NCBI GenBank assembly: GCA_011109175.1
Contig: RDEW01000030.1
Location: forward strand, 552,094 to 616,093
Origin: Dicyema japonicum
Taxonomy: Eukaryota > Animalia > Dicyemida
Length of the DNA: 64,000 bases
Direction: 5' to 3'
Both the position numbers and the translations under genes were made by a program. Positions within the stretch are counted from its first letter, which is position 1, and each line of letters starts with the position of its first letter. Below are positions 4,087-63,224 of the stretch, piece after piece. The notes below the pieces were generated by a model that saw only the letters and a list, made by a program, of their open reading frames with translations, did not search any database and was not told the DNA's origin.

Positions 4087-5615
4087 GGATGCAACACACA
4101 AGAAACACTGGATGCAATTAAAAAATTGAAAAATGACAGATCGGCAGGACCAGAGAATATCCCAGCCGAACTTATAAAGTATGCCCCAGTGAAGTTGGTA
4201 ACAATCATTACCAATATACTCAACAAAATATTTGAAGAAAACACTACGTTAGACATTGGCAAGGGTTGGTTAATTCCACTGCAAAAACCGGGAAAACCCA
4301 AAGGGCCCCTTTCCAACCTAAGACCAATCATCCTACTAACTACGCTGCGAAAAATCTTGTCAATCATTACATTGGAAAGAATCAAAGACAAGGTGGAGTA
4401 TTTTCTGTCACCAGGACAAAGTGGTTTCCGGTCAGGCAGATCCACTGCCGATGTCATTTGGACACACAGATGGTCAAGTGCTCTATGCCAAAAATATAAA
4501 AAGTGCATAGATGTTCTCGGAATAGACATGTCCAGAGCGTTTGACTCAGTTCATAGAGGCAAACTTCTTGAAGTACTCACAAGCTTCCTAACAACGGATG
4601 ATGTCAAAATTATACAAAAACTACTGCAGAATACGCAACTAGCAACCAAACTCGGAAAAACTACTTCAGAATTCTTTTATACTTCACGTGGAATTCCGCA
4701 AGGAGACTCTTTGTCACCAGTTCTATTCATAATCTACCTGGAGGCTGCACTGAGAGATTTCAGGCCTTTAATTGAGAACAACAAAATAATCGAGTTAATA
4801 TATGCAGACGATCTTGACTTTGTTTCTGAAGATGTTGAAATTCTTCATCACGTTCTCAAGAACTTACCAAATGCCTTTTCTAAATGGTTCTTAGTTGTCA
4901 ACCAAGACAAAACTGAATATACAAAACTTGTACGAGTTGTACGCACTTACGATGAATCATGGAGAAGGCATAAAACAGTTGGTTCACTACTTGGAGACTC
5001 AGAAGATGTTACCCACAGATATATCCTTTCCACTGCTGCATATAAAAAATTCTTAACTATCTGGCGTTCTAAAATGAGCATAACTACGAATACAAAGCTA
5101 AAATTGTATAACATTCGTAGTTCCAGTCCTGACATACAACTGTGGGACATGGGGGATTACGAAACGGGAAATGGACAATCTGGATCAATTTTATAGAAAT
5201 CAACTAAGAAACATCTTGAGAATACATTTCCCGAAAAAGATATCAAATTCAGAACTGTACAAAAGATGTGGCTTAAGGCCATTATCAGAGGAGATTCTCA
5301 AGACTAGGTGGAGACTTTTTGGTCACATCTTACGAATGGATATGTTGACTCCACCAAACATTGCAATGGAGAACTATTTCGCACAACTGAAGGGATCATT
5401 CCGTGGCAGGCCTAGAGTGACGTTGCCTTCAGTACTAAATGATGACCTAATCCGAATAAACAAAACTCTACGAAATGGTGAAGATCTTGACTCACTACGA
5501 GCAATGGCCCGGAACAGGGGAACATGGAAAAGGATGTGTGGAGGATACTGGACGTGGCACAAGGGGAACTTAATTAATCTAATTAATTTTTGATTTCCCG
5601 GGAGTGCTTAAAAAA
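4087..5615 (+). mobile_element. 5'-truncated RTE-clade LINE with 13-bp TSD
   Basis: RT ORF 4126-5196 (GIDMSRAFDSV, GIPQGDSLSP, YADD) continues after a frameshift near 5113 into 5171-5593 (RWRLFGHILR, GRPR). Short A tail. AATTCACTAGAGT is duplicated at 4074-4086 and 5616-5628. Confidence 0.92.
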
Positions 5616-5989: not shown

Positions 5990-7500
5990 TTTTTAAGTTC
6001 CTAGGCTTTGACTCAAGTCCCCCCATAATAAAGTTTGTGAGGATTTGCAGATGCATACTTGTAGATAGGCATTTCTTAAATCCGTGCTGGATTCTTTAGG
6101 TAGATATAGGAAGCTCTTGTCCAAGACCATTTTCTCAAGAATTATTGACAATGCGCATAATAGGGATATTTGTCGATAAGAAGAGAACTCTATTGGTTTT
6201 CCAGGATAAGAAGAGAACTCTTTTGGTTTTCCAGGTTTCTTAACTGTGTGGATATGGGCCAACTTCCACATTGTTGGAATTGTGTTTCTTTTTATGGATA
6301 TGTTGCATATATGTTAGTGCTGAGTTCCCTGGGACCAAACTATTTGGTAACAATCATAGGAATTGTTATCTGGTCTGCTTAAGTAGGTTAGCTTTTGGGA
6401 TTTAATGGCATTTTCGACCTCCACAGGTGAGAATGATATATCATGACGACATCTTAGTTTTATCAAAGACAAGGGTGGACCCTCGTACTTTTTATGAGAT
6501 AAGTTGCTGTTCTTAGCGTAGAACTTGATCATTCTATCGGTTTCCTTATTGCTGAATTCAGGACTGTTTCTCTTTTGATTTTGAAGGGTTTTTCTCCATT
6601 TGTCCACTTTCTTTTTCTTAGAGATGTTCTTTATTTTTCTATCCAGCACTCGAATCCAATTATTGGGGATGGCATTGGATGCTTCTGAGTAGATTACGTT
6701 CATTCATAATCTTTTTTTGTTCAAAACATTTAATGTATGATTTGATTGATCTTTCTCTGATACTTTCATTGCCTGCTGGATCTTTCTGTTAACATGGGAA
6801 ACTGCATTATCAAGTGAATTGATGCGTAATGAATCGAAATCTACTAAGTTTATGTCAAAATATTGCGCAAAATCTTTCCAAATAACGGTACTGTTGTAAT
6901 CCAGAAAAATGTAAAACATCCAGAAGGAAACTCCTTTGGGCGGGAGGTGGTAAAAGGAATGTACATGTTTACAATTGTAATATTTCCTATGTTTGTTTGA
7001 ATGAAGATCCCAATTTATTCCACGGGCGATGGACGATCATAACGCGAAAACGTGTGACAGATCTCTCTCAATGACTCCTCTTCCACAGCCAAGCTGGCAA
7101 TCCTTTCTGATAACAATGTAACCCGGAAGTGTTGGAATGGAAGAAGAGAGGTCAGCTATGTCTTCTGTAGGAGGCACATGTCGACTTCACACTTCTTTAA
7201 AAAAGTTCTGAGCTCGATTATCTTCCCTCTCATTCCATTTATGTTGAGTTGAATGGTGGAGAAAGACTTCGCTAGTCCCGGATTAGGGTTGATGCCTCGA
7301 GAGATGATTAAGAGCGTTACTAACAGGTCAGATGAGTAATACAGAGAGAGCCTTCCAAAAAGACATTTTTCTTGGATTGGGATGAGCATATGGTCCTTTT
7401 TACTGTGTCTCTAATTCCACAGTCGCCTGCAGGAACGGAGAACCACATGACGCGCACTTATACAATCGATCTTCATGGAAAATGTCCAAGATATAAACGG
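5990..7500 (-). mobile_element. Degraded I-group/Ingi-Vingi-like LINE: 2A-like motif, APE, linker, RT N-terminus
   Basis: LLIISRGINPNPGL, QLNINGMRGK..LQKT (APE start) and KPGKP..SSYRQISLLCALS..LEKMV (RT start). A weak Cys-containing PHD-like remnant lies near 7400-7490. Confidence 0.75.
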
Positions 7501-12830: not shown

Positions 12831-13757
12831 CAAAGAATGTCAATTAAGCTTCATGATAGATGTAAGCTTTTTGTCTTCCCGTGAGCATAGAAGAAATTAC
12901 AGACTCAGAAGACATCAAAAAACCGAAGTTTTTAGCAAAAGAAGCGTCGGGTGCATAGAGAATCTTATCCCTTCTAGCCAAAAATTAAAAAAAAACTTGG
13001 AGAAACGTCTATAAAATGATAGTTAATATGACTCTGTATGTTGCTAAGGGTGGTGGTTGCTACTCTGTGAAACATCTAAATAGGTCAGAATGTCTGGACT
13101 TTGGTAATGTCATACAACCGTGAATGCTTCAAGAATTCAGTTATTCAAGACTAGATTAGTTTTGACGGCAATACTAATGAACAAATGACCGAATATTGAT
13201 TAAAAAAAAGAACAATCGACAATTTTGTGCATTAAAGATGATTTTCTATTATTGTAGCTACGGATAGCTTTGTGGTTAAAATGTAGTATAACAGTGGCCT
13301 AGGTTCGGTTCCCGTCTGCTGGATACATTTGGCTGGTTCTTTTTCTATGTTCTGTCCCCTTCTTCCCTCGTTCAATTAGAGTAGTGCCATGCGATCTACA
13401 CGGTAAGCGTTTTATCATAAAATTTACAAATACTAAAAAACATTGAACAGCTATATTATTAGTTAAATCAAATTTATTTTATTGTTCCAATTTTTCGTCA
13501 ATAATGTCACTAATAAACATGTAGAGCATAATGAATCCAAAGGCTGCCACAAATAGAAAGTTATTGATCGTGTTCAGCTGAAGTTCGTTAATCATCTAAG
13601 AATAACAACAAAAAATAACACAACACTGATAATTTTTAAACTTTAATTATTTTATTATTAAAATATTTTTTAACAATAATAATAATTTAATGAAAGAAAA
13701 TCAACTCTAAGTAATTAAATTAAATTAACACTAATAAAAAAAATAATAATGCAAGCT

Positions 13758-14064
13758 AGCTGTGGCACCATGTGGTGCTTCGTGGCTAATTGGTTGAAGT
13801 TTCTGTTGTTCGTCTGTTCTTTCTCTTTTTTCCTATTAGAGTGGCGTCATGTGATCCATTGTCTAGGTGGCGTCCAGTGCCAGGCCGGCACGAAAAAGTA
13901 TCATTTACTCTCCCCCACTCCACTGGAGGGGTTTCCACAACTGCAAGTATGGACGTCTTTTACCCTTTATGCTAATTACCGATGGACTCTGTTTCTGTAG
14001 AAGTGGAAACTGGATGCAGTTGTTTACTTTAACCTCTTTCTCGGTGTATCCGAGGTTAATAAAT
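13758..14064 (+). mobile_element. Full-length SINE-like element (family A), 307 bp, 9-bp TSD
   Basis: ATGCAAGCT is duplicated at 13749-13757 and 14065-14073. Related segments occur at 20543-20632, 23010-23085, 46084-46250, 53003-53219, 55677-55865, 56490-56545 and 61800-61920. Confidence 0.8.
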
Positions 14065-14309
14065 ATGCAAGCTGAATTCTTCTCCTCTTTGGGCATTGGC
14101 CCTTTGTATCACCCTCACTGATCCCTCGTATACCACTTAAGAAAGCGAATCATTAGACAAGACAGCTGTTTCTCCTAGTTCCTCTTCGACGTCACTTCCG
14201 AGTTCAGAGTCTCTTGAGATAAGATGATTAGTCACTCTTGTAACCTCATCATAGTTATCAACTTTCAGCCCATGTCTATGCTCGATTATCATGTTCTCTA
14301 AAGTTTTTT

Positions 14310-20542: not shown

Positions 20543-20632
20543 ATGACGTCACTTTAATAGGAAGGGAAAGAGGAGGAACAGACAAAATAAACAGAAAACT
20601 TCAACCAATTAGCTACGTAGCACCACATGGCG
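20543..20632 (-). repeat. Family A SINE 5' head only
   Basis: Reverse complement CCATGTGGTGCTACGTAGCTAATTGGTTGAAG..CCTATTAAAGTGACGTCAT aligns with 13767-13850. Confidence 0.8.
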
Positions 20633-20725
20633 ATCCAGTGACTAAAATAGTAAAATTCTAACTTAAATAAGAACCATAATTTAATTAGTTATAAAATATT
20701 TAAATAAAAATTTAAAAAGAGTAAA

Positions 20726-22950: not shown

Positions 22951-23009
22951 CGTTTACTTTTATGTTATTTGACAAATAAAGTTGTATTTTGTGCTTATGT
23001 GGGTAAAGG

Positions 23010-23085
23010 ATTGCTTTCTGTTTTTTCTATTCCTAAGAGGCGTATGAGATCACTCTATCCAAAGAGACGCCCAGTGTCCGGCCAA
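23010..23085 (+). repeat. Degenerate family A head
   Basis: TTCCTAAGAGGCGTATGAGATC..GAGACGCCCAGTGTCCGGCC resembles 13831-13888 and 61859-61904. Confidence 0.5.
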
Positions 23086-24123
23086 TGTCTAAAAATAATT
23101 ATTTGGCTTCAGTTTTCAAAACTAGAATGGGCCAAAAGATCTCTAAAGATCCCTGGGGTGATTTTTTGACATTTACATGTGCCTATGACTCTAAGTTTTC
23201 CACTTGAATGAAAATGAAAATACATGAGGGGGTGCAACCTACCAAATATCCCCCTCTACAAAATCTTTCTTAAGTACATCGAAAACCTTCCGAGATAAAA
23301 GAAGCCTCAGAGGCCCCATTTTGGAGAGCAAGATGCCTATCCCCGTCAGTTTCGACCTCCCCCTTGCTGGTTTGGGATCACATAGTTTGATGGGACATTA
23401 TTTTTTTGACTAGTGATTCTGGTGCAATAATAACAATGATGAATCGATTCAGTACCCGCAGAAACTAAAACCCGTACATGCGGAGTCTAATTCCTTCGCT
23501 TTTGAAAAGAAGACAGAAATCTTCCTCGTTTATCTCCTTCACGGGCAAAGAAAAATTTCTCAACCCAGAAGTTTTCTACTCGGATCGAAATATTTTTGAC
23601 TGTTTGTGCTGAGCTCCAAAGATTGTAAGTCTGGGGTTAATAAATATCTGAGTGAACACTCAGTCTCGTTCTATAAGAATCCCACATTCTAGTTAATATA
23701 GGCCTTAGTGCTCATCAAGGACTGTTGGTGTATGTTTATTATAATCTGATTATTTTCTGACAGGAGATTGTAGAAATCGTCCCAAAGAGCGTCAAAAGCC
23801 AGACTGTTTTTTGGCTAAATAAAGTTCCCTTTGATTAGAAAAAAGCCAGACTTGGAAAACAAAATGAAATATCAGAGATACTCAGCACATCGAGCGTGTA
23901 AACTTTGTTGTTCAAACTAACCATATCCACAATGTCTTGCATAATTGATTAGGTTTGTTGGAAGACAACCAAGTATGGATAGTGTGGGAATATTAGGAGT
24001 TCTTACGGATTAAGGTTCCAGAGGTATTGGGGACTGGAACTTTCCAGAAGTCCTTAGTTCCATAAATTTAAAAACTCGTTTTTGACTAATTTAAATCTTC
24101 AAAGTTTTTTTTCCAGGAAATGA

Positions 24124-36695: not shown

Positions 36696-38070
36696 TTATT
36701 TATTTATTTATTTATTTAATAACCCCGAAAAGGGAACACCAAGAAAGAAGGAGTAATCCAACTAATTAAGTGATCCCGGTACGCCTCAACAGGATCGAGA
36801 GGTTTTTCCTGTGTTCCTCCAGAGTACCCACGGCTTTCCTGAATAGACGACGATCATCTTTCATTAGAGTTTGAAGAGGAGTGGGTTTTTTCCCCAAATT
36901 TCGTGTATTTGAGGCCTTTAGCCTTGAATGGAAGAAACGACTTGTTTCTTGGCCACACAGACAGATGAAGCCGGAGCCATTATTTTTGATTGCGGCGTGG
37001 TCAAGCATTGGAGGGAAAAGATCGGGGGTAGATTCGTTTGACGTGCTAGTTTTCCAATTAGGGTATTGATCTTGAGTGAATTTGATATCGAAGCTCCATA
37101 GGCCCATGAGGCACAAGCGTACTCAATCGTCGGTTTTAGGAGTTGATTGAACACGACGAGGGCGCATTCCTGTGAAGGTTTGGACTTCAAGAGCGGTTTG
37201 ATTATATTAAGTTTCCTGAGACCCTTTGTCATAACGTTCTTCACATGTTGAGAAAATGTCATCAAAGGGTCAAATGTCACTCCCAGGATAGTTGGACGAG
37301 TCTGTAGTGGTAAGGAGTCTCCAAAAATGTTCAAATCCAGTGTATGTTTTTCTTTTCTGTCCGTGGTGAAGATTGTATATGTTGATTTGTCCCTGGATAC
37401 GGAGAGACGATTCAACTTCAACCAGGCTCCCAGGTCGTCAATATGTGACTGAAGCTCTGATTTTGCTGTACCCACGTATTTGTTCCTGCTAGCGATGATT
37501 AGGTCGTCAGCATAAGTGAGAAGCATTGAATCTGGTCCTCCAGGGCAGGGTAAATCGTTGAGGAACAAGTTGAATAATGCCGGAGAGAGGGGCGATCCTT
37601 GAGGGACGCCATTTGGTAGGAGACGGGACCTCGATCTTGCGTGGCCTATACAGACACGTCCTCTTCTTCCGGAGAGAAAATTGGCTATCCATCTTTTCAA
37701 ATCCGTCTGAATGGTGGTGTCAAAAACCTTCTTCGTGAGTAATATTCTCGAGACAGAATCGAACGCCTTCTGGATATCCAGGGAAACCATTATTGTCCGT
37801 AGATGGCGTTTCGGTACGTTGAACCCTTCTGATATAAATTGAGACAGTGAAGTCAAATGTGTCGTAGTTGAACGCTCACATTTGAAACCATGTTGAAAGT
37901 GGCAGTCGGGCAAATGGGGTTTAATTTTCCAGAGTACGAGTTTCTCCATTAGGCGCGATAATGCGCACGTTAATGAAATTGGACGGTAGGAAGAAGGTGA
38001 GGTTTTCGGTTTTCCTGGTTTAAGGATCGGTATTATAAGTGAGTTCTTCCATTTGCATGGGATGACGTTC
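36696..38070 (-). mobile_element. 5'-truncated I-group/Ingi-Vingi-like LINE with 22-bp TSD
   Basis: 384-aa RT ORF (YRPISL, DIQKAFDSV, GVPQGSPLSP, YADD) and a (TAAA)n tail. AAAATTAAAAGAAATCAGGTTA occurs at 36674-36695 and 38071-38092. Confidence 0.92.
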
Positions 38071-39059
38071 AAAATTAAAAGAAATCAGGTTAGCCATTTA
38101 ATAAATAGTTTGAATTAATTTTTTATTTATAATTAATGAATTAGTTAAATGTTGTTCTTAAAATAGTTAAAAGAAAGTTATATTATGTAGTATATCTCTG
38201 TTTACCATGGAAACACGTAAAAAAACAGGTTGCTCATAGGCTTCAACACATAATACAATACTTTTATTTATGCAAATAAATTCATTGTTGAGATGAAATT
38301 TGGGAATTCTAAGTGACAATTACGAAAAACGCTGACGGATCACACTAAAAGAAAGCGAGAATTACTCGAAGCTGGAATCAATTAATTAGTTGGCTTTGAC
38401 AATTTTTTCTGGTGATCTGAGGTTTCTTAAATAAAGAATGCCTAATGCGGATCAAGGATGGGAAAGTATTTTTGCATTTTTGAGATACATAAATCCGATC
38501 TTTGGGACGAGAAAGTGATCTCCAAAAGAGAACTCCATCAATCAACCAATTTTATTTAAACTACTTGTTGCTTCACTCAGATTCGCTTTGGATATTTCAA
38601 AGAATGAAACAAACTCAGACTCATGTCTAAGTCGTGCTGACCTAGTTAATTTCCTTCTTAAAGAGACTTTCCCTTTTTAGGAGCCCTCATTCTAATGGAC
38701 TTGTGGAAGTGATTAGCAATCGTGGTTGAAATAATTAACTAGAACGAAAAATAACATGAATACAGGAAAGTGAATTTTAGAGGAGTATAGAGATCCATTA
38801 TGATCGTTAATTCCAGGATCATTTAATTAGCTTGGTTTAAAACCTTTTTTCTTTGTGATTTGGGGGTAAAATAAAATAAATGAATCGATGAGATAGATGG
38901 CAACCCAAATTTATAAACTAGCCGATGACGCAGTGTACAAGTGTCGGGCAAAGTCATGATACCCCTGGGTTCGAATTTTGCTGTTGTAGGTTTCGGCTCA
39001 TGGTTCCACGTATCTACAAAAAGGCTTAATTAAATTATTATTATTTTATACCTGTTGAG

Positions 39060-42600: not shown

Positions 42601-42808
42601 TTATTAACCCAGGCTTACAATTTTTGGTAAGTCCAGGACAAACAGTCACAACTATTAATTCACGAAAGGAACCCAAGAGAGAACGTCTACTTGCACCGAC
42701 CAAATTGATCCTCCAATAATCCATTATAGGCTTCCTCTCTGGAGTGGTGGAGAAGTAGATCCACCTCTTCCATTGTCATCGCACGTCCTACTGTCGCGAC
42801 ATAATTTC
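42601..42808 (-). repeat. SINE-like family B, 3' part
   Basis: Reverse complement aligns with 48890-49103 (GTAGACGTTCTC.CTTGGGTTCC..GACTGTTTGT..CTTACCAAA). Confidence 0.8.
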
Positions 42809-43139
42809 ATTCTTTAGAAGAGTTTTCATTATGGAAAATCTTCGGCAACCGATTATAACTTATACGAATCCTTAATTATGGATCTTTGAAGAAGTCTCGA
42901 AGATATCTCCATTCTAAACAAATTCTGACTTACAGTAAAATCAATTAAAAAACAGTTTGTGTGTTTCTTCAACTAGAGTGTTGAGAAAATATGGATTGGG
43001 TAAATAAAATTGATCTTTATGTTTAAAACCCTTTTGGAAGTTCCAATTAAAAAGTCAGAAACTTATACTTCTTAGAAATATCCAATACAAACTAATATAC
43101 TGGAATCAATAATTGATTTCTTCTAAGATTCTCAAAATT

Positions 43140-45976
43140 TTTGGTTGAGGTGGTGACGTCCCTCTTGAAAAGTATGTCTGAAAAACACGAAAATATCAAC
43201 CTAAATGACTTCTCTCTTTTAACGTTCAATGTCAGAGGACTCTCTAGTGCATGGAAAAGAAAAGAACTTTGTGAAGACCTTTCAAAATACAAAATATCAA
43301 TCGGATGTCTCCAAGAGACAAAAATATCGAAGGAGTTTGAAGAACAACACGGAAAGTTTCAGTTAATCTTTCTCTCTGGGGATCAAAACATTACGGAATA
43401 TGATTCGCTGTAAGAAAGGACTTAGTCCAGCGCATATACCGTCACTTGACTATCAACGAAAAGATTGGGATTTTACAAATAACATTGGACGATCATAATT
43501 CTCCGAAGAATTATCTAACTATTATTAACACATATGCTCCACATAGTGGATGGATCAAAAAGAAACCCGAGGAGATTGACGACTTTTATGCAAATCTGTC
43601 TGATGTTTATTCCAATTATGAAAATTCCACATTAATATTGATTCCCGGTGATCTTAATGCAAAAGTTGGAAATCGAATCACTATAGAAGAATCATTCATT
43701 GGAAGACATGGAAGGGGAAAAAGGAACATTGCAGGAACCTTGTTAGCTAGCTTTTGTCAAGCAAATAACCTATTCCTTTGTAACACGGCCTTTATGCACT
43801 CGGCAAGACACAGGACAACTTGGTCAGGCAATAGAACTAAGTCTGACGGAAGCATTGCGAAAATCTACAATCAAATAGACTACATTATTTGCAGACAAAA
43901 AGACCGCAGTATTGTCACTGATGCCCGTGCTTATGGAGGGTCTATAATTGACAGCGATCACAAGATGGTTATTGCCAAAATGTCCTTAAAGAAACTTATG
44001 GGTTTGCAAGGGATGAAAAGAAAGTGCAATGAACACACGGAACTGCGGGGAAGGGATACGTTATAGACCATCTAAAGAACAATACTATCCAGGGAGAGGA
44101 ATTCAGAAAATACCTCGATGAGGGATTGGAAGTAATATCAGTAGATTTGGCACCGCAAATTGCGTGGACCTTGGTCAAACAGAAGATCATGATTGCTGCG
44201 GATATATACCTGAAAGAGGACTACGTAACTAAAATACCCACTGAAGAAGCAACCGCTTTGAAACTCCTTGCAAATCAACAAAAGGCGATATGGATACAAT
44301 GTCCAAATACAGATGACAAAAATACGAAACAGCGGCTACAAAAGGAAAGAACAGTCATCAAAAAGAAAATAAGAAAAGCTGATATTAAAGAACGAAACAA
44401 TAACAAAAATAGAGAAAATCGAAGGCCATAAAGACAATGCGAAGTTTTATGAAGCTGTCGGACAAATCTGAAAACTACCAAAGAAAACACTGACTTTACG
44501 AGATGAAGAAGAAAAACATATTGCTAACCAACAAGAAATTGCAGAACTTATAGCGGATTATTTTGAAGCACTATTCGTATCAAAAAATAGCAAAAAACTC
44601 ACCATTAACACGGATAAGGGAAAATTAGACGAAGAAATAACTTTGGAAGAAGTGATGACAGCAAGTTACAAACTGAAGGACAATAAGAGTCCCGGCCCAG
44701 ATGGCTTAATTGGTGAATTTTTCAAATATGGAACTCAAAAGCTATATATGATAATTGTTTGGATTCTAAACGAAACGTATATTAAAGTTGCCACTTTGCC
44801 ACTTTGAGAAGGACTATTTATACCAGTACAGAAGTCAAACAAAAAATCGGGGAAAGTTGAGAACCTAAGACCAGTGGTCTTAACCAACACATTACGGAAG
44901 ATACTAGACAATATTACGCTTTAAAGAATGGAGGGACGCCTAGACTAATACCTGTCGGCTTATCAAAGTGGCTTCCGCAAAGAAAGATTAACGTCAGATG
45001 TTATGTGGTGCCACAAATAGAGATGTGCACTGTTCAAAAATTTAAAATAACGACAACCATTCTGGGGATTGATATGTCAAAGGCGTTTGATTCCGTCAAC
45101 AGGAACAAACTGCTGCAAATTCTGGAGCACTTCTTGAAGACTCAACGATTAGGATGGTAAAGACACTCTCGACGGACACGAGTTTGATGGTCAGGACTGG
45201 GAAAGCTTTATCGAGGACATTTGAAACGACAATTGGTACCCCTCAAGGAGATCCATTATCCCCGATTTTGTTCATTATTTATCTGGAGGCAGCTCTACGA
45301 GACTTGAAGCCTCATATCAGAGAAGGCGTAGATCAAAAAAACTAGGATCACTTCTCGGTGACACAGAAGATATAACACGAAGGAAGACACTAACTAATGT
45401 CGCTTTCAACAAAATGAAGAAGACCTGGCTTCTGCACAAAGGGCTTGACCCTAAAACTCGAATGAGACTATACAATACCCTAGTGAGGCCAATCCTATTA
45501 TATAATGCCGGTACATGGGCATGTACAGGGCAGGAACTCGAAAAGTTGAATTCTTTTCACAGAAATCGTCTCCGAGCACTCCTTTTTTTCTCGAAGCTTT
45601 TTCAAAATGCCGTTCGAAATCTTATACAAGAGAACAGGAACAAAGCCAATATCATGTGATATTACTGATTCAAGATGGAGGCTCTTTGGACACATACTCC
45701 GCCACGATATGGGGACCCCTGCCAACATAGCAATGGAGGAGTATTTTGTTTTAGAAGCTTCTCGTTTCCGCAGCCGGCCGAGGACACACTGCCGGTTATT
45801 CGATGAAGATCTCAAGAGGATTGGAAAGTGCCTTAAAGATGGGGACGATCTAGATATGCTACGGAACATGGCAACGGATCGAAAAAGATGGGGGACGTTA
45901 ATTAGATTGTTAGCTTTTCGTGTTGCACATGCTTTGTCATGATCTTGGCATCGCGTACGTGCCTATAATAATAATA
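43140..45976 (+). mobile_element. Near full-length RTE LINE (APE+RT), frameshifted, 12-bp TSD
   Basis: TFNVRGL..CLQETK, YAPH, GDLNAKVG, NQIDYII, SDHKMV, GIDMSKAFDSV, GTPQGDPLSP, RWRLFGHILR and a (TAA)n tail. ATTCTCAAAATT occurs at 43128-43139 and 45977-45988. Confidence 0.9.
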
Positions 45977-46850: not shown

Positions 46851-47564
46851 CACTAAATAAATTGGATTTATGGGAGTGGTTTAACACCATTTTAACGAAA
46901 CGCATCCTTATCAAGCATCACTTCCATATCTGCCTTTGTGGGAACTCATTTGAGTAGAGAAGAGCGAGATCATGTTTAGATGCTGGTCAGGCACAGAGCG
47001 TCACCTTAGAAAATCAGATCACATAACACCCCTTAGGAATTGAAGTGGACAAAGACCAGAAAGGAATCCTTCTGGCATCTAGATAGTAGCGTTCTGGGAA
47101 CCGATTCCACATCCAATCGCGACATGAGCTAAAACTAATTATCACGTGATCCGATGCGTTCAATTAAAGTCCTCCCTTGTGCCCGCTCATGACCTTATTG
47201 GGCGGCTGACTTAATTTTTAGGGCCGCATTCCGGAGTCGCATAAGATCCTCAAGGGGAGTCAGCCAGGTTCGATGTTCCCTACAAATCCACAAATCTGGA
47301 ACTTTGAAAGTCTTTTTTGCATTTCCTCGATCTTCCTCATATTTGTCCAAAATATGGACAGTCCCCAAGAGGCGCATGCATATGAGAAACATGGCTCGAC
47401 GTTCATCAGGACTGGGTGATTATAGATCTTCATATTCCCGAAAAAACAATATTAGTAGATTTGATAAAATAAAATTAATAAATTTACCAAAAATATTTTA
47501 AAATTATTGGCCTACAATAATAATCAATAAAAGAATTAATGTATTTTATCACTGGCAGTCTATA

Positions 47565-48776: not shown

Positions 48777-49103
48777 GATCCCACCCGTGAGGCGACGAGT
48801 CAGAGTCGAAAGGGATCCTCCTACTTTCTCCTTGACCGAATCCACTGGTTAAGATTTTCCGCTATGAAAACTTTTCCTGTAAAGAATGAAGTAATGTCTG
48901 CGACGGTAGGACGTGCGATGAAAATGGAGGAGGACGGACCTACTTCTCTACCTCTTTTTGGAAGCAGAAGCCTGTAATGGACTGTTGGAAGGTGGATTTA
49001 GTCAGCACAAGTAGACGTTCTCCCTTGGGTTCCTTCCTTGAGTTAATTAGTTATGACTGTTTGTGCCGGGCTTACCAAAGAGTATAACCTTGGAGTTAAA
49101 AAT
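48777..49103 (+). repeat. SINE-like family B with structured head
   Basis: Body matches 42601-42808. Head GATCCCACCCGTGAGGCGACG..CGAAAGGGATC. Confidence 0.75.
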
Positions 49104-50291: not shown

Positions 50292-51462
50292 TCTATATTC
50301 AAATCTATCAAGATATCGACTCCTACCAAACGGTGTTCCCCAGGGATCAGTCCTTTCACCCTCACTTTTCAACCTTTACGTCAAAGACATCCCAACAACC
50401 CAAGATACGTTACTATTGACATATGCCGATGATCTAGTAATCGCATCCAGGAGTGGCGATGTTCGACTGGCCACCGAAAAAGTGCAGTACCACCTGAACT
50501 TGCTATCCGACTGGATGAACTTAAACTGGATGAGTGTTTCCACCTCGAAGTCATCAGCTACCCTGTTCACAACCGATCGAAGACAATTCAACCTAAACCC
50601 CACACTCTCGTTGGGTGACGAACCACTCCCCTTAAATAAATACCCGAAGATCCTTGGAGTTGTCTTCGATCCTTCACTCTGTTTCAACAGACAAGTGGAG
50701 GAAGTAATGACAAAAGCCAAGCGGAAACTTAACATATTACGGGCAGTAGCTGGCCACTCAAACGGTCAGCAAAAAGAAAACTTAACTCTTCTCTACAAAC
50801 AGTTCATCAGGACTACACTCAACTACGCCTCACCAAGTTGGGCCCCCTCAATCTCCTTGTCCCTTTCTCAAGAACTGCAGAAAGTGCAAAACTCGGCGCT
50901 GAGAATAATAACTGGCTGCTTAAAGTCAACCCCCACCGACCATTTACATTGGGAGTCGAAAATCCTCCCGCTCTATGACCACCTGGAAATGCGTAATTTA
51001 CAATTCCTACGGCAGTCGTTCGACCCGAATCACCCAGTTCACGCTTTGCTAAGTAACAATAACCGCAGATACATACGCAGGACCCTCTTTGACCTACAAA
51101 GAGCCTTGTCGAAGATCACCCCCCCTCAAGAAGACTCAACTTGGACCCGCCGAATCCATGATTTTATCTCAACACGGGCCATTAGGACACTTCAATATAA
51201 CAAAGTCTTGGAGCGCTTCCCCCCGATATCAGTCCAACGGAACAATCGCTCCCGAGGAAGATCAGAATCGGACTGGCTCGCCTACGGTGTGGACACCACC
51301 CTTTTCTGGCTGGCAGAGTAGTTCGAGACCTTTTTCCCTGCCCTGGACCACCGGATGCAAAAGTCGAGGATCTCTGGGAGCGGCCTGTCCGGACTGCACG
51401 CTCTTTGATGGTCGCCGGCTTCCCACTTGCTGGCGAAGCCGGGGTTAATAATTTAATTTATT
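50292..51462 (+). mobile_element. 5'-truncated I-group/Ingi-Vingi-like LINE with 12-bp TSD
   Basis: GVPQGSVLSP, YADD, ILGVVFD, YASPSW, QNSALRIITG and GGGGTTAATAAT tail. TAAATCTTCCCG occurs at 50280-50291 and 51463-51474. Confidence 0.9.
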
Positions 51463-52480: not shown

Positions 52481-53002
52481 CAACGTCCAACAATGTTCGA
52501 GAGGATTATTGATTTTATTAACAAAAAAATATTTATTTCATTTTTTAAATACACCGTATCTACTTCGTCAAATTGTTTAAAATAATTTTTTAATTTTTTG
52601 ACTTATAAACATATTGACAAGTCACATACTTTTAGAATTGCTATTCCATATCTTCTGTATTATCATTAATTAGATTTTTTTCTTGCTGAGTTGAAGTTGT
52701 TAAAGTAATTCATCTCTCGTTAAGATATCTTCTGAAATTCGATCTACGATATTTAATTTTTTATGAGTTCAGAAAAAATTATATTCGCGTTTCCCACGAT
52801 TATTATTTGGCGCTTCTTTAGTAATCCATTTTTATGTTTGTTGCCCTCATTTTTTTGGATAATATCGACAAACTTCATGCTGTTGAATGAGATTTGAAAA
52901 CTTTAATCACTCTTTGTCCATTGGCTGTATATGTGTGCACATACGGTGCTATTTAGGGCTCTTTTGCTGTTATTACACTATCCTGGTAAATTTTAATTAA
53001 AT

Positions 53003-53219
53003 TATTAACCCCGGATACACCGAGAAAGAAGTTAAAGTAAACAACTAATTAAGTGTATCCAGTTTCCACTTCTACAGAAACAGAGTCCATCCGGAATCAG
53101 CATAAAAGGTAGGACGTCCATCACATGCAGTTGTGGAAACCCCTTCAGTGGAGTGGGGAAGAGCAAATTTTCCTTTTTCGTGCCGGCCTGACACTGGTCG
53201 TCACCTAGACAGGTGGATC
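53003..53219 (-). repeat. Family A SINE starting at GATCC of the structured module
   Basis: Reverse complement GATCCACCTGTCTAGGTGACGACCAGTGTCAGGCCGGCACGAAAAAGG.. continues to the GGGGTTAATAAT tail. Confidence 0.85.
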
Positions 53220-55676: not shown

Positions 55677-55865
55677 TTATTAACCCCATATAAACTGAGA
55701 AAGAAGTTAACAACTAATAAATTGTATACAGTTTCCAACGTCACATAAGCAGTTCGTCACACAAGTCCATCCGGAACCAACATAAAAGGTAAAAGATGCC
55801 AATCTTTGCAATTGTGGAAACCCCTTTAATGAAGTGAGAAGAGAAAATGATCCTTTTTTCCACCC
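55677..55865 (-). repeat. Diverged family A SINE
   Basis: Reverse complement GAAAAAAGGATCATTTTCTC..GGGGTTTCCACAATTGCA..GGGGTTAATAAT. Confidence 0.7.
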
Positions 55866-60860: not shown

Positions 60861-61615
60861 AGTGTCAAAGTGCATGCATCTACGATATTTTTGGTGGATG
60901 AGTGTTGCAGTCATCAGTAAATATTTCAACAAATCGTCTACTAGGACTCACTCAAAGCAAAAAAGATAAAAGAAGTAAAGAATATTGCTTGGACCCCTTC
61001 TTAATTAGTTTTTATAACTGTCTTACTCTAATAAAGTGTGTGTCCTGCCTATGCAGCATTGTGGCTCTCGTAAAAAGTGTTTTTGTTTTTTTTAATGCGA
61101 ATCATTCTGGCCGGCATCCAAAAAGAATAACTTTCTTATTTACTCTACTTTCAGATAAGGATGGACGAGATGCTTAGAATTGACTGGTCTTAATCAGACC
61201 GTGGGATCAATCTATACCTTAATTCGATATTAATTAACTCTTAACTTCTTTCCGGTATATTCGGGGCTATTAAACATAGAAATTCTGTCAATTTGGTGAA
61301 GGTTCCATTAATCTAAAATGTTTATGTTGAAGAAAACGCCGTCATCAGTGTTTCATCACTGCAGAACTGGATTGTCTTATGGACTCAGATAATAGAAGAG
61401 AATAAAAACGAGAAGTCAAGAACATTTACAATGTCTAGGATTAATAAGTAGTACTATTCTTTTAAAATAGAGTATGAGTTCTGCATAGAGATTTAAGAAA
61501 TGAAACCATTAGATTTTTTTGCCGAAATGGCTGTTTTTTTAATATAAAAAATTTAATAATTAATATTCACTGCCATGTGCTTTGTAATTGTAAGATATTA
61601 TATTTAATATAAACT

Positions 61616-61687
61616 GGGGATGTAGTCTAACGGTATGACGTCTGCTTTGCATGCTGAAGGTTCCGGGTTCGATTCCTGGCGTCTCCA
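61616..61687 (+). tRNA. trnA-UGC: tRNA-Ala (anticodon TGC)
   Basis: Acceptor stem GGGGATG/CGTCTCC, discriminator A, anticodon TGC at 61648-61650, T arm CCGGG-TTCGATT-CCTGG. There are T-T mismatches in the D and anticodon stems. Confidence 0.88.
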
Positions 61688-61693
61688 TTTTTT
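61688..61693 (+). terminator. Pol III terminator (T6)
   Basis: TTTTTT immediately follows the tRNA 3' end. Confidence 0.75.
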
Positions 61694-61799: not shown

Positions 61800-62035
61800 C
61801 GTGTTAGCTGCGTAGCGCCATGTGACTAGTTGTCATAATTTATTTTCCTTCCTTCGATGGCGTCATATGATCCACCTTACTAAGGAGACGCCCAATGCCT
61901 GGCCGGCATCACGAGGATCCAACTATTCCTTCCTCGGGGACAAATTCGTTACCTGAGACAAGTTCTTCAACGCTGGAGCGGCTAAGGGCCAAGGAGTTAG
62001 TTAGTTTGGTTACCCTTGGTTTTTGGAATAAATTT
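61800..62035 (+). repeat. Family A-related short element with structured head and a different body
   Basis: AGCTGCGTAGCGCCATGTG start and GGCGTC..GATCCACC..GAGACGCCCAATGCCTGGCCGGCAT..GGATC module; GTTAGTTAGTTTGG..AATAAA tail. Confidence 0.65.
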
Positions 62036-63224
62036 AATTTTTAATTAACAAAAGAACAGTGGATGTACTACCTCACATGCTAAATGTGAGATCGGAGGAG
62101 TGCGCATTTTCCGGTCATTGAAACGTAAGGAAATATGACCTGTAATGTCGTCTTGCGGAAGATTTTTTTATTTCGGGTTTGTGAGAATGTCGAAACTGAC
62201 CGTGGGATCTCTTTACAAATGGGACTGCGTTTTGTATCGATGTTGATCCCATTCGGAACCTCCAATTTGTTGAAATAAATCATTCCCCATATTCTGGAAA
62301 CATCAAACCCTTTTTGCTAGGCTAATCGGAGAGTCTGAAAGTTAGAGATTCCACTAAAGATACGGAATACCTCACCTCATTAATCGATAAAGCCATCAGT
62401 ATCAACGACCTTTTTGTGAAAGTGTCGATTGGATGTCCGTTTGGCTTCACTATTTTCAGCGATGGATGAGAAGAGGCCCTCACCATGATGTAATAACTGC
62501 CGGCTTACGGACATATAGCTGCTGCTCTCTGCAAGAAGAGATGTCTTTGTTGTGCTGGAGAACATGATCTTGCCAGATGTGAGGGCATACCTGGATCGAA
62601 GATTGACTGCATAAACTCTGGTCAACCAAACATTGAGCAAGGTACGGAGGATATCCAATTGCTAAAACAGCTAAACTAATTTTGCGAAACAATTAAACAA
62701 AGTCTATCCCAAAGAAGGCCTTGGCAAGTCATGTTCCAACGAAGACCGTGTCACCGGTAACTAACAATCTTGGCCTGCAAAATCAGCTTCGGTTGAAATT
62801 ATGCAGAAGTACCAGAGAACTTTAGGAGGCCTGTCATTTAACCTCCCTGAGAGAGTGTCTAACGAGTTGAAAGAGGTAATATCCCGACTGAAGGAGTCAT
62901 GTTCAATAGCGAAAGAAAGTAGTGACCCTGGCTATGGAGGGACCAGGCTGGCGAAATGTTTGAATATATGTTTAAGGATGTTTTTTTCGTGTCCAAAATT
63001 GACTCCAGATACAACACGGAGAGTTAAGTTTTCATCAGGACTTTAGGATGATATGGTCCACGTGGGACGATAAAGAAAGTGGTTATTAATGATCCCAAGT
63101 ATTTTTGCAGTTTTTGTCACAGGGAGAACATTTCCAGATATCTTCATTTCAGGTTGAGCGTTAAACAGTCGACGATCAGAAGTAAAACTGTAAAGTAATT
63201 TATTTAATTAAGGTTCCGCTTGTG

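Follow-up and report, generated by a model that had tools for sequence, protein, structure and literature searches.

A double-pseudoknot module in HDV helix order in APE-type LINEs and their short derivatives of Dicyema japonicum: a fold that is probably copied uncut

Introduction

HDV-like ribozymes are thought to serve LINEs by freeing their RNA and by aiding its translation. An element of 307 bp at positions 13758–14064 of the stretch analysed here (64,000 nucleotides of Dicyema japonicum contig RDEW01000030.1, called the window below) was described in an initial annotation as SINE-like and as carrying a module with the helices of such a ribozyme. This locus raises the questions of what kind of element is present, whether the helices represent a selected RNA structure, and whether the RNA copied back into the genome has been cut by it.

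The genome of D. japonicum comprises 67.5 Mb in 377 scaffolds with 49% repeats (PMC6736024). Dicyemid mobile elements have barely been described, and the Dicyema genome paper mentions only LINE-1-type ORF2 copies (PMC6736024). The assembly searched in the present work contains 67,542,437 bases in 377 contigs.

The element and its parts

The element is bracketed by a perfect 9-bp direct repeat, and other copies of the same family (family A) possess target duplications of their own, 10–14 bp long. This repeat and the abundance of full-length relatives confirm that the bounded 307-bp unit of the initial annotation is real. The following parts are distinguished.

13749–13757 (+): 5' target-site duplication ATGCAAGCT, identical to the 9-mer at 14065–14073.
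13758–14064 (+): full-length copy of the non-autonomous retroposon family A, about 10% from its closest relatives; positions 6–318 of the nhmmer consensus correspond to 13762–14063.
13762–13796 (+): head, two degenerate tandem copies (13762–13778 and 13781–13796) of the LINE 5'-terminal motif CGTGGCGYCATGTGGT, from comparison of the consensus with LINE 5' ends.
13797–13842 (+): pyrimidine-rich linker with the 3' end ...CCTATTAGAGT, abutting helix P1.
13843–13904 (+): LINE-derived double-pseudoknot module, 62 nt, from helix reading and alignment.
13905–14003 (+): body, whose initial ~40 nt on direct reading still resemble the LINE 5' UTR 3' of the module (ATTTGCTCTCC and a short hairpin).
14004–14064 (+): 3' tail, LINE-derived according to the LINE 3'-end alignment, with the hairpin CTCGG-TGTAT-CCGAG at 14040–14054 and terminal GGTTAATAAAT.
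14065–14073 (+): 3' target-site duplication, the same 9-mer as at 13749–13757.

A search of the assembly with the stretch 13758–14064 returned 1,782 first-look candidates of family A. The 40 that were scored are all full-length, with 87–91% identity, and are located on many contigs. The exact 20-mer GGCGTCATGTGATCCACCTG at the module start occurs 424 times genome-wide (reversed control, 0); with a decay of about 6% per copy this number fits roughly 1,500, and the family size is about 1,500–1,800 copies. Contamination from the octopus host, whose kidneys the parasite inhabits, is conceivable, yet the repeats occur on hundreds of contigs.

Related copies and LINEs

The module recurs in at least two short-repeat families and is also situated at the 5' extremity of several subfamilies of APE-type LINEs. 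Family B is represented by 824 candidates in the assembly and has a 40-nt head and the module in common with family A. A covariance model built from family B modules with helices P2, P3 and P4 only recovers families A and B and more diverged versions, some of them at the 5' ends of APE-type LINEs. The related features of the window are listed below.

61807–62040 (+): family B copy, head and module (61859–61925) as in family A, body and tail different; covariance model score 97.5 bits.
53001–53219 (−): family A copy, 5'-truncated within the module (it begins in the P2 5' strand); profile match.
55677–55859 (−): family A copy, 5'-truncated at J4/2; profile match.
7390–7455 (−): module heading a decayed APE-LINE of subfamily G, P2 and P4 intact, P1 unpairable, J4/2 TAAAAA; model match.
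36714–38072 (−): LINE from the module-bearing group, 3' part, with the reverse transcriptase (RT) open frame 36918–38072 and a 3' UTR, the end of which matches the family A tail.

The additional window copies named in the initial annotation are thus genuine: the copy with the module at 61859–61925 is a complete member of family B, and those at 53219–53001 (−) and 55859–55677 (−) are 5'-truncated members of family A.

Exact LINE-type module starts number 97 in a whole-genome pattern search, and about 60 complete LINE modules were obtained from pattern searches (subfamilies H, C, I, E, F1 and F2). At locus L058 (−), subfamily E, the module begins at 1339 and an ATG about 27 nt later opens a frame ...ISVIQFNVNGINGKILELRTLISKIKIDILLIQESKL, which on its sequence is a typical APE endonuclease N-terminus. 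Other LINEs headed by the module are found at L034 (from 1807), at L049 and at window positions 7455–7390 (−).

Relatives of the RT open frame have 42–48% identity, and labels of the 'jockey/X-element' kind appear only further out. The module model search found no module on the two foreign contigs with the closest RTs. The closest foreign RTs sit on GC-rich contigs; one ENA contig of 5,588 bp (L092) contains two LINE copies head to tail, and their junction has GGTGTC...GACACC followed by a CTGG/CCAG hairpin, where the module model gives no match.

The window is rich in non-LTR elements. LINE fragments with RT or endonuclease open frames are located at 4126–5196, 43446–44066 and 50416–51321 (all +), and the '1303-aa open frame' of L091 (G000:C64:9000-17000) results from reading through the N of an assembly gap and does not represent a gene. 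A family A head and linker only (consensus 8–96), without module or tail, is present at 20543–20634 (−). An additional short-repeat family, at 48777–49090 (+) and about 42700–42950 (−), begins with a 5'-truncated, more compact module (P2 GATCCC/GGGATC, P4 CGAC/GTCG, J4/2 AAA), and one of its copies lies inside a minus-strand LINE. An old, decayed short-repeat family (22980–23110 (+), 46919–47048 (−) and L078:1928-2093) has the linker ...TTCCTAAGA before the module; its intact relatives with ...CCTAGA directly followed by GGCGTC are found elsewhere in the genome.

Origin of the head and the tail

The head has the consensus GCGTGGCGCCATGTGGTGCT, which differs little from the LINE 5' end ACGTGGCGTCATGTGGTCC; the latter consists of the leader CGT, the P1 5' strand and the P2 5' strand. 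The second head repeat, TCGTGGCTAATTGGTT, is more degenerate. At the other end, the family A tail is 76% identical over 67 nt to a LINE 3' end (window 36776–36714 (−)), situated just below the RT frame 36918–38072. Both the tail and this LINE end have terminal CGGGGTTAWTAAAT and (AAAT)n.

A tRNA-derived head was considered and rejected, the head matching the LINE 5' end. No tRNA, 7SL or 5S head was detected by ARAGORN, which reported only a tRNA-Ala at 61615–61688, or by the Rfam search of the heads at E<=10. The tRNA-Ala(TGC) in question (+, 59.9 bits) is intact and unrelated to the element head; about 120 bp separate it from the family B copy downstream. The body contains a TTTT run (13958–13961), which would be expected to terminate pol III transcription.

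With LINE 5' and 3' ends, target-site duplications, 5' truncations and no open reading frame, the element fits best among LINE derivatives with an internal deletion and a partial duplication, of the NARTc/RIME/SIDER or R2 SIDE type, and not among pol III SINEs. The term SINE-like in the initial annotation therefore stands in the sense of a retroposon family with target-site duplications; in the pol III sense it falls, since the tRNA, 7SL or 5S head is missing and both head and tail are LINE-derived.

Fold of the module and covariation

The module presents a nested double pseudoknot with the strand order P1, P2, P3, P3', P1', P4, P4', P2'. In the window copy (+ strand) the helices and junctions are located as follows.

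13843–13848 / 13869–13874: P1, with two G-U wobbles.
13851–13857 / 13898–13904: P2, with one mismatch (C13856/T13899).
About 13859–13860 / 13865–13866: P3, with L3 at 13861–13864; compared with the family consensus it has lost 1 nt and shows a C-to-T change, both of which weaken it.
13875–13876: J1/4, CA.
13877–13881 / 13887–13891: P4.
13892–13897: J4/2, GAAAAA.

The helices were placed correctly in the initial annotation, in HDV order, and the damage in P2 and P3 of this copy was noticed as well. With these mutations the copy at 13758–14064 is almost certainly inert; given the P2 mismatch and the P3 deletion, self-cleavage by it is highly improbable.

An alignment of 95 distinct modules was fitted by the model with P2, P3 and P4, P1 being outside the model. 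Standard pairs in the four-helix pseudoknotted structure occupy 90.2% of its cells. With shuffled partners the value is 84.9%, and none of 500 shuffles reaches 90.2%; when partners are slid by 1–3 columns it falls to 30–46%. Because copies within one family are not independent, the comparison between families carries more weight.

This comparison shows P2 and P3 changing on both strands. The P2 core is GAUCC/GGAUC in family A, GGAUCC/GGAUCC in family B, GGUCC/GGACC in subfamily E and GGUUC/GAACC in H, C and I, while subfamily F has GGUCU/GGACC, which includes a U-G pair. The outer P2 pairs are U-A and G-U in family A and G-C and U-A in family B. P3 is CCU/AGG (A, B), ACC/GGU (A, C, H) or CCA(G)/(C)UGG (E, F, I). 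Four positions covary in P2, and one or two in P3. P4 is always a hairpin of 4–7 bp with a sequence different in every subfamily (GUGCC/GGCAC, AUGCC/GGCAU, GUGCA/UGCAU, GAGUGCG/CGCACUU, GGGUGCA/UGCACCU, GUGUA/UACAC, AAUGCU/AGCAUU and CUGUG/CACAG).

The P1 5' strand GGCGUC is invariant, and its 3' strand is GACGCC, GGCGCC, GGCGCU or GACGUU, all of which pair with it. Double compensatory changes are absent from P1. Since all variants of the 3' strand are one-sided transitions tolerated by wobble pairing, they lend P1 weak support, and this helix is plausible.

Chance complementarity within a repeat, with no selected structure, could be considered as the source of these helices. The nested minimum free energy (MFE) z-scores are unremarkable (−2.0 to +0.8), and the copies of one family do not count as independent observations. 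However, MFE folding works without pseudoknots and is uninformative on this module, pairing is lost when the partners are slid, and the same four helices, built of other sequences, are found in independent LINE and short-repeat subfamilies. Chance is accordingly a very improbable explanation. The double pseudoknot, with its helices in HDV order, is concluded to be an RNA structure under selection; P2, P3 and P4 are well supported.

Ribozyme features of the core

Rfam HDV-like models, to which the initial annotation had pointed as a check, gave no match: none at gathering score in the window and none at E<=10 on copies of family A, family B and LINE subfamily E, four stretches in all. Since pseudoknot pairs carry no weight in Rfam models, the test is a weak one for such a module. 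A hammerhead was also considered and rejected, as the CUGAUGA core is absent.

The C of CGAAAAA had been proposed as the catalytic residue. In family A this C closes P4 as part of a covarying pair (pair 56–97, G-C in A, A-U in B), and J4/2 of family A is GAAAAA because the C belongs to that pair. An unpaired C in J4/2 is found in B, H, E, I and F2, with CAAAAA in H, UCGAAAAA in I, CAGAAAA in E and GCGGAAAA in F2. It is missing from AGGAAAA (F1), GRAAGA (C) and UAAAAA (G). Subfamilies F1 and C have thrived, multiplying although their J4/2 has no C; as F1 is among the best-represented subfamilies, the LINE has multiplied without any C in this junction.

Nearly all subfamilies have CA as J1/4. 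L3 offers a UG partner for it in A, B, C, H and F2 and none in F1, E and I, and no consistent P1.1 can be drawn across the subfamilies. The length of L3 varies from 4 to 13 nt and that of J4/2 from 5 to 8 nt. The cleavage-site end of P1 is G-U in the LINE subfamilies (P1' GGCGCU) and G-C in families A and B and in the window copy. The caveats of the initial annotation, namely a non-canonical L3, a long J4/2 and upstream sequence travelling with the element, all hold.

Census of 5' ends

HDV-like ribozymes cut immediately 5' of P1. Genomic copies are a natural record, in thousands of examples, of the 5' ends of reverse-transcribed RNAs, and the 16–20 nt upstream of intact module starts were therefore inspected with genome-wide patterns. 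An intact 14–18-mer was required, and up to 100 matches of each pattern, taken in contig order, were considered.

The linker ...CCTATTAGAGT or a mutated form of it precedes the module in 98 of the 100 listed family A copies; of the remaining two, one has the linker of another family and one is truncated about 8 nt upstream, so that none begins at G1. The family B pattern gave 100 copies among the matches listed: about 94 have variants of ...TTCCTTCCGAT, 3 have the linker of another family and about 3 are ambiguous, with unrelated sequence right up to G1 in only one. In all 97 LINE-type copies the flank is variable up to a conserved, subfamily-specific leader of 5–15 nt (AAACGT, TTCTCGT, (ATG)TTAGCGT, ATGAAACGT or ATGTTAATGCAACGT). 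Clear starts at the predicted cut are thus found in none of about 300 copies listed.

Among 100 heads from the matches listed, about 95 retain the 6–7-nt leader GCCGCGT, comparable in length to most LINE leaders. An alternative pairing of P1 with the palindromic GGCGCC of the head was rejected: it predicts starts at head G1, but about 95% of the listed heads keep GCCGCGT. The statement that some 85 nt upstream of P1 travel with the element is borne out by the linker, kept in 98 of the 100 listed family A copies, and by the wide retention of the head.

Since leaders, linkers and heads are retained, the reverse-transcribed RNAs still held what cleavage would have removed. This argument is indirect and speaks against cleavage in vivo only as the source of the genomic copies, not against cleavage as such. 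The sequencing runs that contain the stretch are four of unrecorded type, from one 2019 study; RNA runs are not among them.

In many members of family A the target duplication is separated from the canonical start by additional nucleotides, which in some cases are inherited. Four copies share the 5' extension GATTTYRAAAATA. At L021:1500-1834 (−), a family A copy, the head is directly preceded by ATATGCAAGCT, which equals the flank plus target duplication of the window copy (13745–13760). Inherited 5' extensions mean that the transcripts begin upstream and are untrimmed. The L021 copy suggests that a source gene, either the copy at 13758–14064 or a close relative in its place, formerly gave rise to transcripts that began upstream, L021 being its daughter.

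Alternative readings of the module

The module could be a working variant of the HDV-like ribozyme that cuts 5' of GGCGUC and so separates the element RNA from longer transcripts; R2 and L1Tc are precedents. Several features are in agreement with this: the helix order with supported P2, P3 and P4, the location at LINE 5' ends, a C followed by a run of A before P2' in most subfamilies, and the G-U pair closing P1 in LINEs. Moreover, active HDV-like ribozymes have precedents both at the 5' ends of LINEs and in short elements derived from these (PMC3185411, PMC4035085, PMC3774820). However, none of the listed LINE-type or family A copies begins at the predicted cut (about three of B type are ambiguous), and the subfamily leaders, the whole 85-nt head and source-flank extensions are inherited. 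The putative catalytic C is paired in family A and missing from F1, C and G. A consistent P1.1 is lacking, J4/2 of 5–8 nt and L3 of up to 13 nt are off-pattern, and Rfam yields nothing at E<=10. A working ribozyme is therefore unlikely, and a self-cleaving ribozyme capping the element, as the initial annotation had it, is not upheld, in view of the missing Rfam match, the paired or absent C and the sequence retained 5' of the cut. The C-bearing subfamilies (B, H, E, I and F2) and the G-U-based P1 of the LINEs indicate that some variants could still cut in vitro; residual or full self-cleavage in at least the C-bearing variants has perhaps one chance in several.

Alternatively, the DNA of the conserved block could be what chiefly counts, serving the LINE as an internal promoter or start site, with the RNA fold secondary. 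No family departs from the 5'-strand sequence GGCGTCATGTGG, whereas the strands paired with it differ; precisely this sequence recurs at the extreme 5' end of the short elements, and the leaders are of fixed short length. Pr77 of L1Tc provides a precedent, being a promoter that overlaps an HDV-like fold (PMC3383444, PMC4748587). Nevertheless, this reading leaves unexplained the compensatory changes in P2 and the ever-changing but always paired P4, 40–60 nt downstream, and the source-flank 5' extensions of many copies point to imprecise starts. It appears more doubtful still than a working ribozyme.

Proposed explanation and role

The reading preferred here, with a probability of roughly 0.6, is that the copy in the window is dead and belongs to a short, non-coding kind of APE-type LINE derivative, in which the module would be a selected fold in HDV order, copied uncut and structural rather than 5'-end-making. 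The build of such an element could be summarized as one to two partial LINE 5'-terminal motifs, followed by the linker, a complete LINE 5'-UTR domain and a LINE-type 3' tail. The short element is presumably copied by the LINE reverse transcriptase via this tail. The module may well descend from an HDV-like ribozyme. The RNA copied back into the genome would be uncut, and the fold would act as a structure instead of an enzyme that makes the 5' end.

Judging from position and conservation, the module could be a cis-acting 5' signal for translation initiation or for (co-translational) RNP assembly on the LINE's own RNA. The distance of about 27 nt to the start codon in subfamily E suits such a role. 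Family B retains a remnant, CAATGTCG, of the LINE start-codon region. The short elements would keep the module for access to the same LINE machinery. The invariant GGCGTCATGTGG, repeated at their extreme 5' end, probably serves in addition as a promoter or start-site element, acting as DNA or at the 5' end.

A more specific version of the preferred reading is that the HDV-type fold has lost self-scission in this LINE lineage and that compensatory evolution preserves it in another capacity. Without catalysis, it would be a 5' platform on which cap-independent translation or RNP assembly takes place, and non-autonomous elements would require it for their mobilisation. This version is offered tentatively, its probability being about one third.

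Significance

HDV-like folds at LINE 5' ends and in short derivatives are already known, including the folded but inactive SIDER versions and the two-signature SIDER2. The Dicyema repeats stand apart in systematically retaining upstream sequence, in having a non-canonical core, in carrying the module behind a duplicated 5' motif, and in their host. New results are the census of LINE 5' ends, the J4/2 survey, the derivation of the head and the match between the tail and a LINE 3' end, and the reading of these repeats as pol III SINEs is corrected.

A well-conserved, HDV-shaped fold whose cut appears unused is of wider interest. If the fold is non-catalytic, its structural role (translation, RNP assembly) would be separable from the catalytic one, which would explain its capture by short parasitic elements. 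If the exapted-fold reading were true, retrotransposition in the highly reduced genome of this parasite would rely on an exapted ribozyme scaffold as its cis-acting signal.

Comparison with known systems

The SINE superfamilies CORE, V, Deu, Ceph, Nin and Meta have a conserved central domain and pol III (tRNA or 5S) heads. The Dicyema repeats resemble them in an internal domain common to several families with different tails. The difference is that no pol III head is detectable here and that the domain traces to the 5' UTR of the partner LINE.

With the HDV, CPEB3 and drz ribozymes the module shares the order P1-P2-P3-P1'-P4-P2', a P3 of 3–4 bp, a purine-rich J4/2 that often begins with C and, in LINEs, the G-U pair at the base of P1. 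In contrast to them, it has a P1 of 6 bp, a J1/4 CA without a consistent P1.1 partner, an off-pattern L3 of 4–13 nt and a J4/2 of 5–8 nt, and it has no covariance-model match.

The R2 ribozyme and the R2 SIDEs are similar in having an HDV-like fold at the LINE 5' end and in derivatives that keep this 5' fold together with the 3' end recognised by the RT (PMC3774820, PMC3414825). R2 ribozymes show rigid conservation of the catalytic C and of four further positions, and their cut, at or upstream of the 5' junction, agrees with genomic junctions (PMC3774820). The Dicyema core, unlike that of R2, is not conserved, and its junctions disagree with cleavage.

A close parallel in architecture is Pr77/L1TcRz of L1Tc/ingi and of NARTc, RIME and SIDER1/2. 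L1Tc is cut at +1, in agreement with genomic 5' junctions (PMC4035085), and its kin cleave at the same position, whereas in Dicyema the sequence preserved ahead of the expected site amounts to 5–15 nt in the LINEs and to about 85 nt in the short repeats. The host is a kinetoplastid in one case and a dicyemid in the other, and the likeness seen is one of architecture. SIDER2 has a second signature, and some SIDER versions fold adequately without cleaving (PMC3185411, PMC3383444, PMC4035085). Pr77 in L1Tc combines promoter and ribozyme (PMC3383444). In both systems a 5' block of about 70–80 nt, with an HDV-like double-pseudoknot fold and a proposed promoter role, is common to an APE-LINE and its abundant short non-coding derivatives.
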